Of a stretch of DNA of 64,000 nucleotides, positions 581 to 50,921 are shown one piece after another. The notes beneath the pieces are model-generated. The model was given only the letters and a program-made list of their open reading frames with translations. It ran no database searches and was not told the origin of the DNA. The DNA comes from Calcarisporiella thermophila CBS 279.70. Taxonomy: Eukaryota > Fungi > Calcarisporiellomycota. The stretch's first letter is position 1. Each line of letters starts with the position of its first letter. The position numbers and the translations under genes were made by a program. The stretch covers positions 399,488-463,487 of the forward strand of contig NW_027192206.1 of NCBI RefSeq assembly GCF_041956535.1, given 5' to 3'.

Positions 581-3142
581 TCTTGGGGGGGGGGGGGTTG
601 GGCACTACGGGATGTGCACATGTGCCTACACTGCCACCTATATACAAGCACGTCCATATTCTACTATTTTGTATTGATGCTCTCTGCATTGTATTTGTAC
701 TGTTTTGTATTGTTTTATCCATATCCTCGACTCCAGCAATATCATTGAACGTTATTCTATGCTTCCATTATATGGAGATTTTGGAAACAGATTTATTTGT
801 GGAGGGTGAAAGCATTCGCCAATGGATCCAATAATAAGGGCCAGAAACCTATTGTTCCATTTTTGTTTGAATATCACACTTTAGTTGATACCCCAGCAGC
901 TTTCCTACCTCTTTTATGATGTCAAGAGCCAGAATCGAAATCGTATGAAACCTCCCGCCAATTAATTCCAAGGCCAATCGAGAGTTGGCAGAGGATACCG
1001 AAAGGGGAGTATTGTAGTTTGAGCGATGCTTCTAAGCCACTGCACTAGGCAAAGTGCTAGAGGGGGGGGAGTCTTTAGTAGGGGGCGGTTAGCTTCAAAA
1101 GGAAAAAATAAATCGCTTTTATGGGGTTCGGATGCAAGTAGGAAGACAAGCGGTGCTGCGTCGCGGTTTATTAGATGATACAGCGTCGGCTTCGGTTATG
1201 GGGAGGGTCTTCAGTGAATTGAAAGTCAATTCATTTCTCTAGGTCACAAAAGCAATCGGTGAAAAACTCAGTGAAGGGCCTCCACTCTGTCCTTTCGACA
1301 CGATTGATTTGGCTGTTCTTCAATCTCGCAGAGTGCAAAGCCATGGAGGCCAGGACGGTAGCACTCCTCCCTCATTGGATGCAGCCCATTGGAAAATTTT
1401 AACTCACGAAATGCTCGGCGTCGAGGGAGAGACAGGATAGCCCGCCGACTCCTATGGGGGGAAGGAGGCTTCCGTCGAGGGGGGATAAGCCCTTTAAATG
1501 GAGCTTTTCCTTTTCTTCGGGCACCCCCCCCTCCCGCGTTCCCCCTGGCATTAGTAAGCTTTATGCTAGTATAATATGGTGTTAAGTCACTTGTGGTTGT
1601 GTTCGTGTATATCCATATGTTTGTGTTCGTGTTTCCACGTGAAAATTCATAAGACGCAAAGATAAATAAAAAAGCGCTTCCCTTCTAGAAAAGAGTCAGC
1701 TCAGGGGCGATTCATGGGGGAAGAAGGCGGGCAGAGTTTGGGGGGCTCGATTTTTGCTAGGGGCGGTTACTTCTCGCGTAAGAGTCCGCGATGCTGGGGA
1801 GAATGGGCAGCCGAAATAAAAAAATGCTTATGAGCTTGTGCGGAACGCCTTCTTTCAAGCTTCCGAGCTGGAGCCCCCAACCCCCCTCGGGATTTTCTAT
1901 ATGAATATTCTGGTCACCTTGCGTTGTTCCTTTTCTGGACTCTGAGTTAAGTTCCACGCGTAACGCGACATAGGCGTGTTCTGTTGAACATTTCGTCATT
2001 TCTTGGAATAGGCTGCAGAGGACACTGATCTCGGGATGGCATAGTTAGGGTTCTCTGCCCTCCCCCCACCCCTCCTCTCGCAACTCTCACACCGCATGAG
2101 AAAATAAAATTGGATTTCTTCCCGGGGCCGGCCTCGAGCTCCCCCCTCCCTTCCCCTCGCCCTCCCCTCTCGCGCCCGGCCAAAGGCCTGAGCCAGGCTT
2201 CCCGGGGGGATTGTGGGCCAGGCTCGCACGCCTGAGACGCAAGGTCACGAAAAAGATTTAGAGTTGCAAACGTGTTTTCCACGAGAAAACTTGACAGCAT
2301 TTAGGCTATTCGGGCCTCACGGTGTCGAGGGCAGAGGAGACGGCAGGGGCGCAAACCCCGCTGGGAAGTTGCGTTGAACGTGTGGCCATCGTGGTCATGC
2401 CCGCCGAACTATAATGACGATTTTCTTGGTCGATGGTCGCGCAAGTCCAAGAAGGAAATTTTATCTTCGGCTATCGGAGCCAGGAAAGATACCGCTGCCA
2501 TTACACCTGTTCCGCCTCGACTATTTGACGTGAACTTAAAATTGGCTTTTCGTATTTACCCATTGATACGGAGGTCCGCCGAGCGATAAAAGGATCTCAA
2601 ATTGCGCAGCGCGCTTTTCCCGCTCGCTCTCCCCTCTCTCCTCGGCCTCTGGCCCCTTTCTCTGCTCGCCGCGAAAAGCACCGAGGCCCCCAGTCACCCC
2701 CTCGCCCCTCCTCCACCGTGGTTGCCGTCTCTTTGACGAGAGCTTATTCTTGTGATCTTTTGGTGCCTTTTCGCAGAGCCTCGGATTGGCCGAAGGGCTC
2801 AAAGATTCTTCCGTCAACTCTAATATATACAGGCCCCTCCCCTCCCCTCCCCCCGTGCTGCTTTCTCACAAGGGAAGCTTATCCCCCCTTTCTCTGCTTC
2901 CACGCTTCCCCACCGCGGTTCTGTATACTTCCTCACTCAACAGGAAGAAGTTGCTGGGCTACTTCCATTCCCTGTTTATTCATTGTACATAGACACGCCC
3001 TCCCCCACCCGACCCGACCACGGCATCCCCATTTCCCTCTGAACAAGACCGGGGCAAAGCGCAGAAGTCACACTTGCCTTTGCACGCAAGAAAGCAGGGA
3101 CTGCAGCCAAAAGGCAAGGGAAGGCGACGAAAAGAAGCCGGA

Positions 3143-47304: not shown

Positions 47305-47823
47305 CTATGCTTTTGTTTCCTGAACCGGCTGCTGGGCCGCCTTCTCCTCTATAATGCCCAGGCGTTGTACGTTGCTCTTCGCGGCAGCGTCAGAGTATTT
47401 GCGCGAGGCCTCCTCTGCTTTCCGTCGTGCCTCGATTTGTTTTACTTGCTGGGACTGAATCTGCTGGAATCGCTTAATCTAAATGCGAATCATGGTCACC
47501 ATGAAATGCTGCATAGAGGGGAAAAATAACCACTGTCAAATCCTACCTCCTTCGTGTGGTGCAAGCATTCGAGATAGTCATCTCGTTGTAATACGCACTC
47601 ATCAGGGCGATCCGCCATGGCGTAACATTTGTGAAATTCTTGCCAATAGGCAAAGCATCGGCCGCTACCTATTTCAGTTGAAATATAAAAAAAAATTAGG
47701 AAATCAAGGCAGGTCGAGATGCTCAAGAGGTGGAATGGCCTTCAATAGGTCTCCGATTTCAACAGCCCTTGGATGAATTAATATAAGAGACATACCGCCA
47801 TAGAAACCGTATCCAGATGCCAT
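47305..47823 (-). CDS. NDUFS5: Complex I subunit NDUFS5-like (twin CX9C), 3 exons
   Basis: MASGYGFYGG..GRCFAYWQEFHKC...ECVLQRDDYLECLHH matches the fungal NDUFS5 pattern. Confidence 0.88.
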
Positions 47824-47973
47824 CTCGATCTATATATCTTTTTTGAAATAGCTACTAGGTCAAGTTTAAGTGTTTATCGAACTGGGGTTTTTGTGGATGA
47901 CGTATTAATTAGGTTAGGTTATTCGAATGGAGTCTGAAAGTTGCCTAATGTAAACAAAGCCATTTTTCGCAAG

Positions 47974-47980
47974 TATAAAA
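47974..47980 (+). promoter_or_regulatory. TATA box of the snoRNA host gene
   Basis: TATAAAA about 30 nt upstream of a long pyrimidine tract that precedes the first host exon; lies between the host and the divergent NDUFS5 gene. Confidence 0.55.
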
Positions 47981-48162
47981 AGAGTTCCATTTTGGAGACC
48001 TTTGGACTCTATCTCTTTTCTTTCCTTTATCTTACCTCGTATGTTTACACCCTAAACCTCACCCTTTTTCTTGATCTCTACCCTTGCACGCCATTATGAA
48101 TACTACCGAGGTATTTTTCGCCATATTTTCGTTTTTTTTCCTCCCGTTTTGAAAAGCTCTAC

Positions 48163-48230
48163 GGGATGACAACCTTTATTTTTCAAACTAGAGTCTCCGA
48201 TACAGTATGAGAGACAATTTTATATTCTGA
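48163..48230 (+). ncRNA. snR78: Box C/D snoRNA snR78 homolog (guides LSU Um2421, yeast numbering)
   Basis: C box GGGATGA; guide TCAAACTAGAGTC complementary to LSU GACUCUAGUUUGA; D' CCGA puts the +5 position on GAC[U]; D box CTGA; terminal stem GAAAAGC/GCTTTTC. Confidence 0.9.
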
Positions 48231-48377
48231 TGCTTTTCTCTTTTTCTGTTCGTGTTTCCTGGCTTTTGAAGGGTTTACTAAATCCATGCATATTTGTTTA
48301 GATGCTCGATTTTTAGCGCAAACGAGTGACAAGCGAATTTCAACATAGAGGTAAATATTATTTCCATCATTATGGTT

Positions 48378-48453
48378 GCGATGAAGAAAACATTTATACG
48401 TCAAAAAGCTGGAATTACCGGCTGAATTATTGTGATGTTAATGGCGCATCTGA
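48378..48453 (+). ncRNA. snR77: Box C/D snoRNA snR77 homolog (guides SSU Um578)
   Basis: C box GCGATGA; guide AGCTGGAATTACCG complementary to SSU CGGUAAUUCCAGCU; D' CTGA with +5 on CGG[U]; C' GTGATGT; D CTGA. Confidence 0.92.
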
Positions 48454-48608
48454 GCAAACCCATTTTATGTAATGACAATTTCCGTCACTCGTGCTCATAG
48501 TAACGGTTTTCTTTGATTGTAGTGGATTTGGAGACAATGTAAACACACGAGGCCCCGTTGGTTCCAAGTCTTATTGTAAGTAACTCTCCCTTATCGGCGT
48601 TGAATAGA

Positions 48609-48690
48609 ATGATGAAACGCACTGGGCACTGAAAACCTCATGTTTGAAAGTGCTTAATAACACCGGGTTCCAGAAATCACCCGCTCCTGA
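48609..48690 (+). ncRNA. snR76: Box C/D snoRNA snR76 homolog (guides LSU Cm2197)
   Basis: C box ATGATGA; guide GCACTGGGCA complementary to LSU UGCCCAGUGC; D' CTGA; second element CAGAAATCAC complementary to adjacent GUGAUUUCUG; D CTGA. Confidence 0.9.
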
Positions 48691-48857
48691 CTCATTCTTT
48701 TAAATGACTCTTTTTCAATCATGGTGGATGGAGATCTAATGACCGTATATATCGAATTAGATCCATGCATTTGGTCCCAGCTCGGTCAAAGACAGTCAGC
48801 ATCTCTTAGGGTGAGTTTCTATGCCCTTTCCTTTGGCACTCTTTAAAGGGAGAAAAA

Positions 48858-48927
48858 AGGATGAGAATTTTTTTTTTAGATGACGAGTCAGAACGAGTTA
48901 TCTCTGTTGACACTATGGCATTCCTGA
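48858..48927 (+). ncRNA. snR75: Box C/D snoRNA snR75 homolog (guides LSU Gm2288)
   Basis: C box AGGATGA; TTAGATGACGAG complementary to LSU CUCGUCAUCUAA; GGCATT next to D box CTGA puts +5 on AAU[G]CC. Confidence 0.85.
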
Positions 48928-49099
48928 TTTATTTTCTCTGCCCTTTCCTTGGACTTCAACATTGCATAGAAATACCTGTGCTAACGATAGTTTCCTTGTA
49001 TTTTAGGTGCCGTCTCCGAGTGAGCGTGACCCCCAACCTTTGTTTAGTCGAGTTTTCATGGTACGGCATAAGAAAATAGAATTTTCTTACCAAGTTTAG

Positions 49100-49165
49100 A
49101 GGATGAGCTTAGCATTATCTAGACAAGCATATGTCTGAATGCCCATTTTGAAACATGCTCTCTGA
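49100..49165 (+). ncRNA. snR74: Box C/D snoRNA snR74/U27 homolog (guides SSU Am28)
   Basis: C box AGGATGA; 13-nt guide AGACAAGCATATG complementary to SSU CAUAUGCUUGUCU; D' CTGA with +5 on CAU[A]; D CTGA. Confidence 0.92.
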
Positions 49166-49320
49166 TACTTCCTCTACCACTTATTCGTCATCCTAATCCA
49201 TCCTGGTTATTAACCTGTGGAATCCTCAATTAGGATTACGGATCCTTATTGCGGCCGCTCGACTCCGGTTCGATGAATGAAGGTGAGCCCTCTTTTCCTC
49301 CCTATCCCTCACTAGCTAGC

Positions 49321-49396
49321 GTGATGAAACTTTATTCACGACGGTCAACTGAATCCCTTGATGACCATCCTTTAAAACTAACCCATTTATTTCTGA
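49321..49396 (+). ncRNA. snR73: Box C/D snoRNA snR73/U35 homolog, copy A (guides LSU Cm2959)
   Basis: C box GTGATGA; guide TCACGACGGTC complementary to LSU GACCGUCGUGA; D' CTGA; C' TTGATGA; extra element TAAAACTAACC complementary to GGUUAGUUUUA; D CTGA. Confidence 0.92.
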
Positions 49397-49570
49397 AAAA
49401 TCAACCCATTCATTTTGATTTCTTATGTATGCCTTTTATTAAAGTGCAAGTTGGCTAACCCTCTTAACGCCATTTCTAGATTTCTTGGTGAACCAGGGAT
49501 GTGCAGCGCCGCTAAGCATTTCAAGGTTAGTCTCCACCTCCATTCTTTATCCATCATGTTTTCTTTGAGT

Positions 49571-49647
49571 GTGATGAAACCTTTTTTCACGACGGTCAAC
49601 TGAATCCTTTGATGACCATCCTTTAAAACTAACCCATTTATTTCTGA
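49571..49647 (+). ncRNA. snR73: Box C/D snoRNA snR73/U35 homolog, copy B
   Basis: Near-identical to copy A (same boxes, guide and extra element), in the next intron. Confidence 0.9.
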
Positions 49648-49991
49648 TATTTTTCCTTTTCATCCTTGCATGATAACTCGATTGGAATGATTTGCTAACC
49701 TCTACACTTGTTTATCTCTCTAGGTAAGTCACGCTAAGCCTGCCGCATTAGACCATAGCATTCCATGCATGTGTGGTTTCAATATAAAAAAATAAAATAT
49801 ATCCATTTCAACTAAAAAAAATTGGAAATCGAATTGTTTATGTTTTTAAAAAAAGTATGGGAAGAGATGGGCCCCTATATATGCAAATTAAGTGTATCTA
49901 ATGGCAACAAAAAAAAATCATCATGAAAAAGGGTAGTATACAAAGAGTTTCTACAAAAGAAATGGGCGGGAGGGAGGGGGAACTACCCCTC

Positions 49992-50921
49992 CTATCGAGT
50001 GAACAGTTTCCTTTGGTACTGCGTATTGGGAATGAGATGGGGCGATTCGACTATGTACCGGCGATACGCTTCACGCAGATGTTCGGGACGGATGGGCCCT
50101 TGGTCGCCCCATTCCTCCATGACCTCTTTTGCTAGTTGACAAGAGAGAGCAAAAAAAATAAATGAGACTTGAAGAAAACGACAAGCGAAACAGAGCGCCA
50201 ATCCAAAAATAAGAGAGGGGGAGGGGGAGGGAAGAAAAGGATGGATGAGGAAGGGGTCAAGAGAGAGAGGCAAATACCTTTTTCTACCATTTCGCCCACG
50301 AATACCTTTCCAAAACCGGCTACCACGAAGGCCATAGTGTTGGAACAGGACTGATTAAGGATATTACTGACCAACTGCAGGGATAAGGTGTAGTCATAAT
50401 GCATTAATGCAAAGGATGAACTAGGAGCAAAAGAAAAAACACGTACCCGCTTCACATTGGAGCGGTTCAGCACCGACCGCCTAAAGGCCTCGTAGCGTTC
50501 GAGCTGCTCGGGTGAAAAATTGTCCAGCAACACTCTGTATGCACCGACAAGATCCGGGTTGGAAAAGAGAAAAATAGAAGGGGGGGTCAACGATCCATCT
50601 CTCTTCGAGCCAAGATCCCATGAAATAAACAAACGATCATTACTTCATCTCCTCCTTGGTTCGCGTCAGGAGTCGGATCTTTGTCCGTGCAAGCTGATCC
50701 ACCTGCTCTCCCTGCTCCTCCTCCTCTTCTTCCATTTCCTCTTTTACATTGTCACCCTCCGCCACGGTGGGAGCGGGGGTTGTGGGAGCAAGAGATCCAG
50801 CTCGGGATGGGGGCTGCGAGCGACGGGCTGCGGCTGGCGAAGGTGGGGTCGAGAAGCGAGACTGAGATTTGCCTCGACCGGAAGATTCGGTGCCATAGGA
50901 GGGGTCGAAGGAGGGATTCAT
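49992..50921 (-). CDS. TAF11: TFIID subunit TAF11, multi-exon
   Basis: LLDNFSPEQLERYEAFRRS, VAGFGKVFVGEMVEKA, GPIRPEHLREAYRRY histone-fold motifs. Confidence 0.93.

Follow-up and report, generated by a model that had tools for sequence, protein, structure and literature searches.

We analyzed a 64,000-nucleotide stretch (the window) of the genome of Calcarisporiella thermophila CBS 279.70, a fungus that has been placed in Mucoromycota (PMC11393059). Between two minus-strand genes of this window, NDUFS5 and TAF11, lies a region that is single-copy in the genome and carries seven box C/D snoRNAs within a predicted series of plus-strand introns (Table 1). A first-pass annotation of the sequence had named the same two flanking genes, and our mapping agrees with it. 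The predicted snoRNA host gene is divergent from NDUFS5, with less than 200 nt between the two starts (47823-48005), and convergent with TAF11.

The transketolase gene adjoining the locus encodes a product 100% identical to VTP21DRAFT_3108. Locus tags 3108, 3109, and 3111 run in positional order, and VTP21DRAFT_3110 is left for the interval 47824-49991, which suggests that some gene model, perhaps a spurious ORF, was called where we place the host. The locus had been described as likely unannotated; given this tag numbering, that description is doubtful with respect to the locus itself, although it may apply to the snoRNAs.

A TATA-like box precedes the predicted host transcript, and host and NDUFS5 probably have one bidirectional promoter in common, which would tie the gene for a complex I subunit to an RNA gene of ribosome biogenesis. 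Predicted exon 1 contains a pyrimidine tract (48007-48038) that may be compared with the 5'TOP definition for GAS5-type host genes (a cap-adjacent C, then a pyrimidine run), with the reservation that the transcription start is itself a predicted position. Pyrimidine tracts are common close to fungal transcription starts.

Table 1. Features of the snoRNA host locus and of the separate snR72-type gene (positions in the window unless contig C1 is named; pairing is to the organism's own rRNA)
Feature	Position	Strand	Details
NDUFS5	47308-47823	minus	VTP21DRAFT_3109; start codon at 47823
TATA-like box	47974-47980	plus	~150 nt from NDUFS5 start codon; putative promoter element
Exon 1, predicted	48005-48110	plus	start placed ~30 nt past TATA-like box; alternative donor 48039
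Intron 1, predicted	48111-48301	plus	191 nt
snR78/U52 orthologue	48163-48230	plus	D' 48197; 13 bp to 25S, +5 = U2524 (yeast Um2421)
Intron 2, predicted	48351-48522	plus	172 nt
snR77/SNORD65 orthologue	48381-48453	plus	D' 48422; 14 bp to 18S, +5 = U580 (yeast Um578)
Intron 3, predicted	48576-48760	plus	185 nt
snR76 orthologue	48609-48690	plus	D' 48629; 10 bp to 25S, +5 = C2300 (yeast Cm2197)
Intron 4, predicted	48811-49006	plus	196 nt
snR75/U15 orthologue	48858-48927	plus	D' 48889; 12 bp to 25S, +5 = G2391 (yeast Gm2288)
Intron 5, predicted	49061-49233	plus	173 nt; alternative donor 49020
snR74/U27 orthologue	49100-49165	plus	D' 49135; 13 bp to 18S, +5 = A28 (yeast Am28)
Intron 6, predicted	49283-49479	plus	197 nt
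snR73/U35 copy A	49321-49396	plus	D' 49349; 12 bp (one G-U) to 25S, +5 = C3060 (yeast Cm2959)
Intron 7, predicted	49526-49723	plus	198 nt
snR73/U35 copy B	49571-49647	plus	13 bp (one G-U) to 25S; target C3060 as copy A
Last exon, predicted	49724-49800	plus	predicted 3' end at A-rich signal (AATAAA 49791-49796)
Donor hexamer, branch-like motif, AG	49724-49751	plus	28 nt directly after intron 7 acceptor; no snoRNA
TAF11	49995-50921	minus	VTP21DRAFT_3111
snR72-type C/D RNA	contig C1 249525-249595	minus	71 nt; 13-bp guide before degenerate D'

Box C/D snoRNAs and their rRNA targets

Each predicted intron hosts one C...D'...C'...D unit of 66-82 nt. The D box reads CTGA in all seven units, the C box is consensus in three and a one-base variant in four, and C' is degenerate in four. 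The units span 1,485 nt (48163-49647), all on the plus strand, in the order snR78, 77, 76, 75, 74, and 73. A comparison with Rfam, which had been put forward as a check on the first-pass annotation, returned plus-strand matches to C/D families at all seven, namely SNORD52 (snR78 clan), SNORD65, snR76, snR75, SNORD27, and, twice, Z161/Z228 (snR73 clan), with E values from 3e-6 to 1.7. None of them reaches its gathering score, the best being snR76 with 40.8 bits versus 55. The guides were therefore tested directly against the organism's own rRNA, and the family names used here rest on guide and target identity. For this purpose, the 18S, 5.8S, and 25S sequences were located by pattern search in the rDNA on contig C53, with 18S and 25S taken from neighboring repeat units: the 25S that follows the 18S used reads N, and the 25S of the upstream unit served in its place. 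The same contig has a 5S rRNA match on the opposite strand (L103 1372-1490), partly overlapping the N run.

This analysis uncovered guide-rRNA duplexes of 10-14 bp upstream of D' in all seven units, to either 18S or 25S, with one G-U pair in each of the two snR73 duplexes. As a null, we used the other CTGA sites in the window (n = 164). Pairing of 10 bp was reached at 6% of them and of 12 bp at a single one, and none attained 13 bp. The +5 positions fall on six sites with a yeast counterpart. In addition, three of the 25S targets have a common offset of 103 relative to yeast numbering, and their spacings of 91 and 133 nt are identical to those in Neurospora. A further 13-bp match, before 49612, was rejected as a guide, as it runs through the D' box.

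Could such a pattern arise by chance in AT-rich intergenic DNA, as the sub-threshold Rfam scores of the individual units might allow? We regard the probability as practically negligible, since seven guides fall on known methylation sites in a known gene order, a random order of six families would give that order in 1 of 720 cases, and no null site attains 13 bp. The first-pass annotation had described C/D boxes and a guide aimed at a known methylation site in every intron, with the snoRNAs in the yeast order; the Rfam families and the guides both bear this out. Its count of seven snoRNAs also stands, but they represent six families plus a second snR73 rather than seven families.

The snR76 orthologue and both snR73 copies carry a second rRNA-complementary element of 10-11 nt beside the target. 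In snR76, it is a 10-nt element (48671-48680) complementary to 25S 2288-2297, and in snR73 copy A, an 11-nt element at 49373 complementary to 25S 3073-3083; snR75 has a possible 6-nt extra pairing at 48917. Extra-pairing elements have been listed for yeast snR73, snR75, and snR76, and methylation was shown to increase 2- to 5-fold through the ones in snR75 and snR76 (van Nues 2011, PMC3116282). We postulate that the second elements of the Calcarisporiella snR76 and snR73 pair beside the target and would probably raise the efficiency of methylation. The snR78 of the cluster is a single-guide RNA without a snR72-type D guide.

Predicted introns and release of the snoRNAs

Our independent mapping of the host gave exactly the size ranges proposed before, i.e., seven GT-AG introns of 172-198 nt separated by exons of 46-54 nt (49, 53, 50, 54, 49, and 46 nt in order), with predicted junctions throughout. 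The accompanying statement that introns of ~60 nt are typical here is too low: seven introns measured in neighboring protein genes are 68-146 nt long (median, 86 nt), and the snoRNA introns exceed all of them.

A donor, a branch-like motif, and a YAG were found in all seven units, with 30-52 nt from donor to C box, 44-62 nt from D box to branch A, and 68-83 nt from D box to acceptor. The splice signals keep a nearly constant distance from the D boxes. The branch points of introns 1 and 2 are non-consensus, and the choice of donor is ambiguous for introns 1 (48039 or 48111) and 5 (49020 or 49061). We also applied a test with fixed donor, branch, and AG geometry, which is lenient in that its donor set was drawn from the observed donors. 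Five of the seven snoRNAs passed, and the two misses lie just beyond the search windows; in 2,000 shuffles, no more than two of seven passed (0.45% per site), and the antisense strand gave none. From these sequence signals, we infer that the seven introns are spliced.

In humans, the binding position of the helicase AQR lies ~50 nt upstream of the branch site; AQR has been proposed to couple splicing to C/D snoRNP assembly (PMC10557570); the distance from D box to branch A in Calcarisporiella is near that position. By analogy, AQR-type coupling may apply to the Calcarisporiella host as well.

An alternative is that the snoRNAs are real but are released mainly when endonucleases cut a polycistron that has not been spliced, as in S. 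cerevisiae, with splice signals that are partly vestigial. The weak branch points of introns 1 and 2 would fit such a scheme, and the cluster is documented to have lost its introns in Saccharomyces (Luo 2013, PMC3596301). We consider it very unlikely in view of the complete set of donors, branch-like motifs, and YAGs, spaced as one would expect if release is coupled to splicing, the ordinary introns of the neighboring genes, and the retention of the intronic form in Rhizopus and filamentous fungi (PMC3596301).

The fully spliced model is ~480 nt long and, with the junctions as predicted, has a longest ORF of 33 aa, in keeping with the earlier description of a hidden non-coding host. The spliced exons gave no folding signal relative to shuffled sequences (z = 0.26). 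Two short repeats were observed in the host region: the 9-nt motif TCCATGCAT recurs at 48283 (intron 1), 48762 (exon 4), and 49762 (last exon), and a 15-nt inverted repeat (93% complementary) links exon 1 (48035-48049) with exon 3 (48538-48552).

Models with partial intron retention yield ORFs of up to 127 aa, and the interval is flanked by tags 3109 and 3111. The host could thus also encode a small protein through such an isoform, which would then be locus tag 3110. However, these ORFs begin inside introns and cross snoRNA sequence, eight ORFs of the window are absent from the protein collection, and a search among 1.84 billion representatives returned no credible homologue of the frame common to the two longest models, its sole matches being two repeat proteins with 28-31% identity. 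We therefore judge a protein-coding isoform to be extremely unlikely.

Collectively, these data make it highly probable that the locus is the Calcarisporiella orthologue of polycistronic snoRNA cluster I of fungi, in the form that is encoded within introns. Following the known pathway, RNA polymerase II would make one precursor from the promoter common with NDUFS5, and the spliceosome would remove each intron as a lariat, to be debranched by Dbr1. Exonucleases acting from the 5' and 3' sides would trim the debranched intron to the snoRNP-protected core of 66-82 nt, and the spliced exons would be a by-product. Fibrillarin would then methylate U2524, C2300, G2391, and C3060 in 25S as well as U580 and A28 in 18S.

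The second snR73, the snR72-type RNA, and the end of the host

The seventh unit of the cluster is a second snR73, and no snR72 guide was found in the cluster. The two snR73 copies are identical in 74 of 77 aligned columns (96%), also outside the boxes and guides, and their flanks have diverged to the point where they align no better than unrelated exons. This points to an old tandem duplication whose copies were both kept functional, or else were homogenized by gene conversion. The seventh intron would accordingly derive from tandem duplication of the snR73 intron.

With the aim of locating snR72 elsewhere, we scanned the genome with the antisense of its site in the organism's own 25S. A first pattern, which required a consensus box, gave two matches, and the one examined (L112) was rejected, having no C box. 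The scan identified a snR72-type C/D RNA on contig C1, whose +5 position in the usual register is 25S A975 (yeast Am876), with an uncertain D' register. It lies in a 185-nt minus-strand intron (249455-249639; L114 1390-1574), 44 nt from the donor and 70 nt from the acceptor, a geometry equal to that of the cluster introns. Its one-intron, non-coding host is intergenic and has a separate TATA box, located 145 nt before the donor. The D guide of this RNA has a 9-bp match to 18S A473, which is within chance, and Rfam assigns it no family name. For the site equivalent to Am876, a plant RNA, snoR72Y, is already listed. Relocation of snR72 introns has been described in other fungi (Luo 2013, PMC3596301), and we propose that this separate host on contig C1 supplies the snR72 function in Calcarisporiella.

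Directly after the intron 7 acceptor, a consensus donor hexamer, a branch-like motif, and an AG occur together within 28 nt, a stretch too short for a normal intron in Calcarisporiella. Abutting acceptor-donor junctions are common among fungal snoRNA hosts, and residual intron pieces left after deletion have been described (Luo 2013, PMC3596301). The stretch may be a chance occurrence, a recursive site, the start of the last exon, or the vestige of an eighth intron. It is unlikely that it is specifically the scar of a snR72-bearing eighth intron that left the cluster and is intact today as the C1 host, and the likeness between the two consists of consensus splice signals and three bases. If this were nevertheless true, the locus would keep both ends of an "excision-and-insertion" event in the sense of Luo 2013 (PMC3596301), and all seven families would have been clustered before the Mucoromycota-Dikarya split.

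Relation to known clusters and age of the gene order

The fully intronic form of this cluster, which the first-pass annotation implied to be new, had already been published by Luo 2013 (PMC3596301) and Liu 2009 (PMC2780460). The former study reported that every cluster I snoRNA of Euascomycetes, Basidiomycota, and Rhizopus oryzae lies in an intron, compared the host genes with that of U22, and gave six Magnaporthe introns, from snR78 to snR73, that are confirmed by one EST (its Table S1). In the latter, RT-PCR verified hosts in Neurospora, for which UHG and gas5 were named as the nearest likeness. A Candida RNA-seq study found the same cluster spliced (PMC5033589). The Calcarisporiella locus resembles the clusters of Magnaporthe, Neurospora, and Rhizopus oryzae in having one C/D snoRNA per intron, a non-coding host, D' guides, and the order snR78-77-76-75-74-73, and its intron sizes are similar to those of Magnaporthe (near 180-210 nt). 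The differences concern content. Unlike Rhizopus oryzae, which lost snR76 according to Luo 2013 (PMC3596301), Calcarisporiella keeps it. Its first RNA is a single-guide snR78, whereas that of Pezizomycotina is a snR78/72 fusion. In addition, snR73 is doubled and the snR72-type RNA resides on another contig.

The S. cerevisiae snR78-snR72 polycistron has the same families, order, and rRNA targets, as well as extra-pairing elements in snR73 and snR76. It differs in having no introns, in being processed by Rnt1 cleavage, and in its seventh member, which is snR72 in yeast and snR73 in the intronic Calcarisporiella cluster. snR72 as the last member is a yeast form that is absent in most fungi (Luo 2013, PMC3596301), and Calcarisporiella, with no snR72 in the cluster, displays the majority fungal state.

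The resemblance to vertebrate GAS5/UHG hosts proposed in the first-pass annotation is supported, and Liu 2009 (PMC2780460) had noted the same likeness. UHG/SNHG1 and GAS5 are spliced non-coding hosts with short exons, a single C/D snoRNA in every intron, and a 5' region rich in pyrimidines, and the Calcarisporiella gene, as predicted here, would be built in the same way. Their snoRNA set and order are different, and the likeness is one of design.

In Canzler 2018 (PMC5824354), the cluster and the snR72 guide for Am876 were both traced back to the root of Ascomycota. The cluster described there is comparable to ours in its snR77-73 core, a 5'-terminal guide for U2421, a length of ~1.5 kb, and flanking genes that are not conserved. 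Both the cluster and the Am876 guide are present in Calcarisporiella, a member of Mucoromycota, in contrast to an origin at the Ascomycota root. As snR76 is kept here, the six-gene order is probably older than the Mucoromycota-Dikarya split, against the date given by Canzler 2018, and the evidence favors secondary loss as the reason for the missing snR76 in Rhizopus.

We looked for relatives of the cluster near the orthologous flanking genes and found none near NDUFS5 in Jimgerdemannia, Mortierella, and Actinomortierella, near TAF11 in Endogone and Dimargaris, or near transketolase in Umbelopsis. The flanking genes are not syntenic and no second Mucoromycota copy was recovered, so the dating rests on one genome together with the Rhizopus record of Luo. 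When metagenomes were scanned with the snR73 guide, 97 loci were obtained; most are chance matches, and ~15 resemble snR73/U35. No exact second cluster guide was found within 4 kb of these snR73/U35-like loci, and Rfam returned no other cluster member at the eight of them that were scanned. The snR73/U35-like RNAs on eukaryotic metagenome contigs (L008, L013, L017, L028, L037, L065, L069, L074, and similar loci) have the same 17-nt guide and box.

The mechanism proposed here is ordinary rRNA-methylation housekeeping in a gene design that is already known, and the value of the locus is evolutionary and for annotation. What it adds to known clusters is the retained snR76, the duplicated snR73, and a snR72-type RNA in a separate host. 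Published work disagrees on the age of the cluster, which Luo 2013 (PMC3596301) reported in Rhizopus without snR76 and Canzler 2018 (PMC5824354) dated to the ascomycete root. The six core members all occur, arranged as in yeast, in a genome of Mucoromycota, which favors the older date as far as one genome can. In the same way, the single-guide snR78 at the 5' end and the snR72 housed elsewhere in this genome bear on a later entry of snR72 into the ascomycete cluster.
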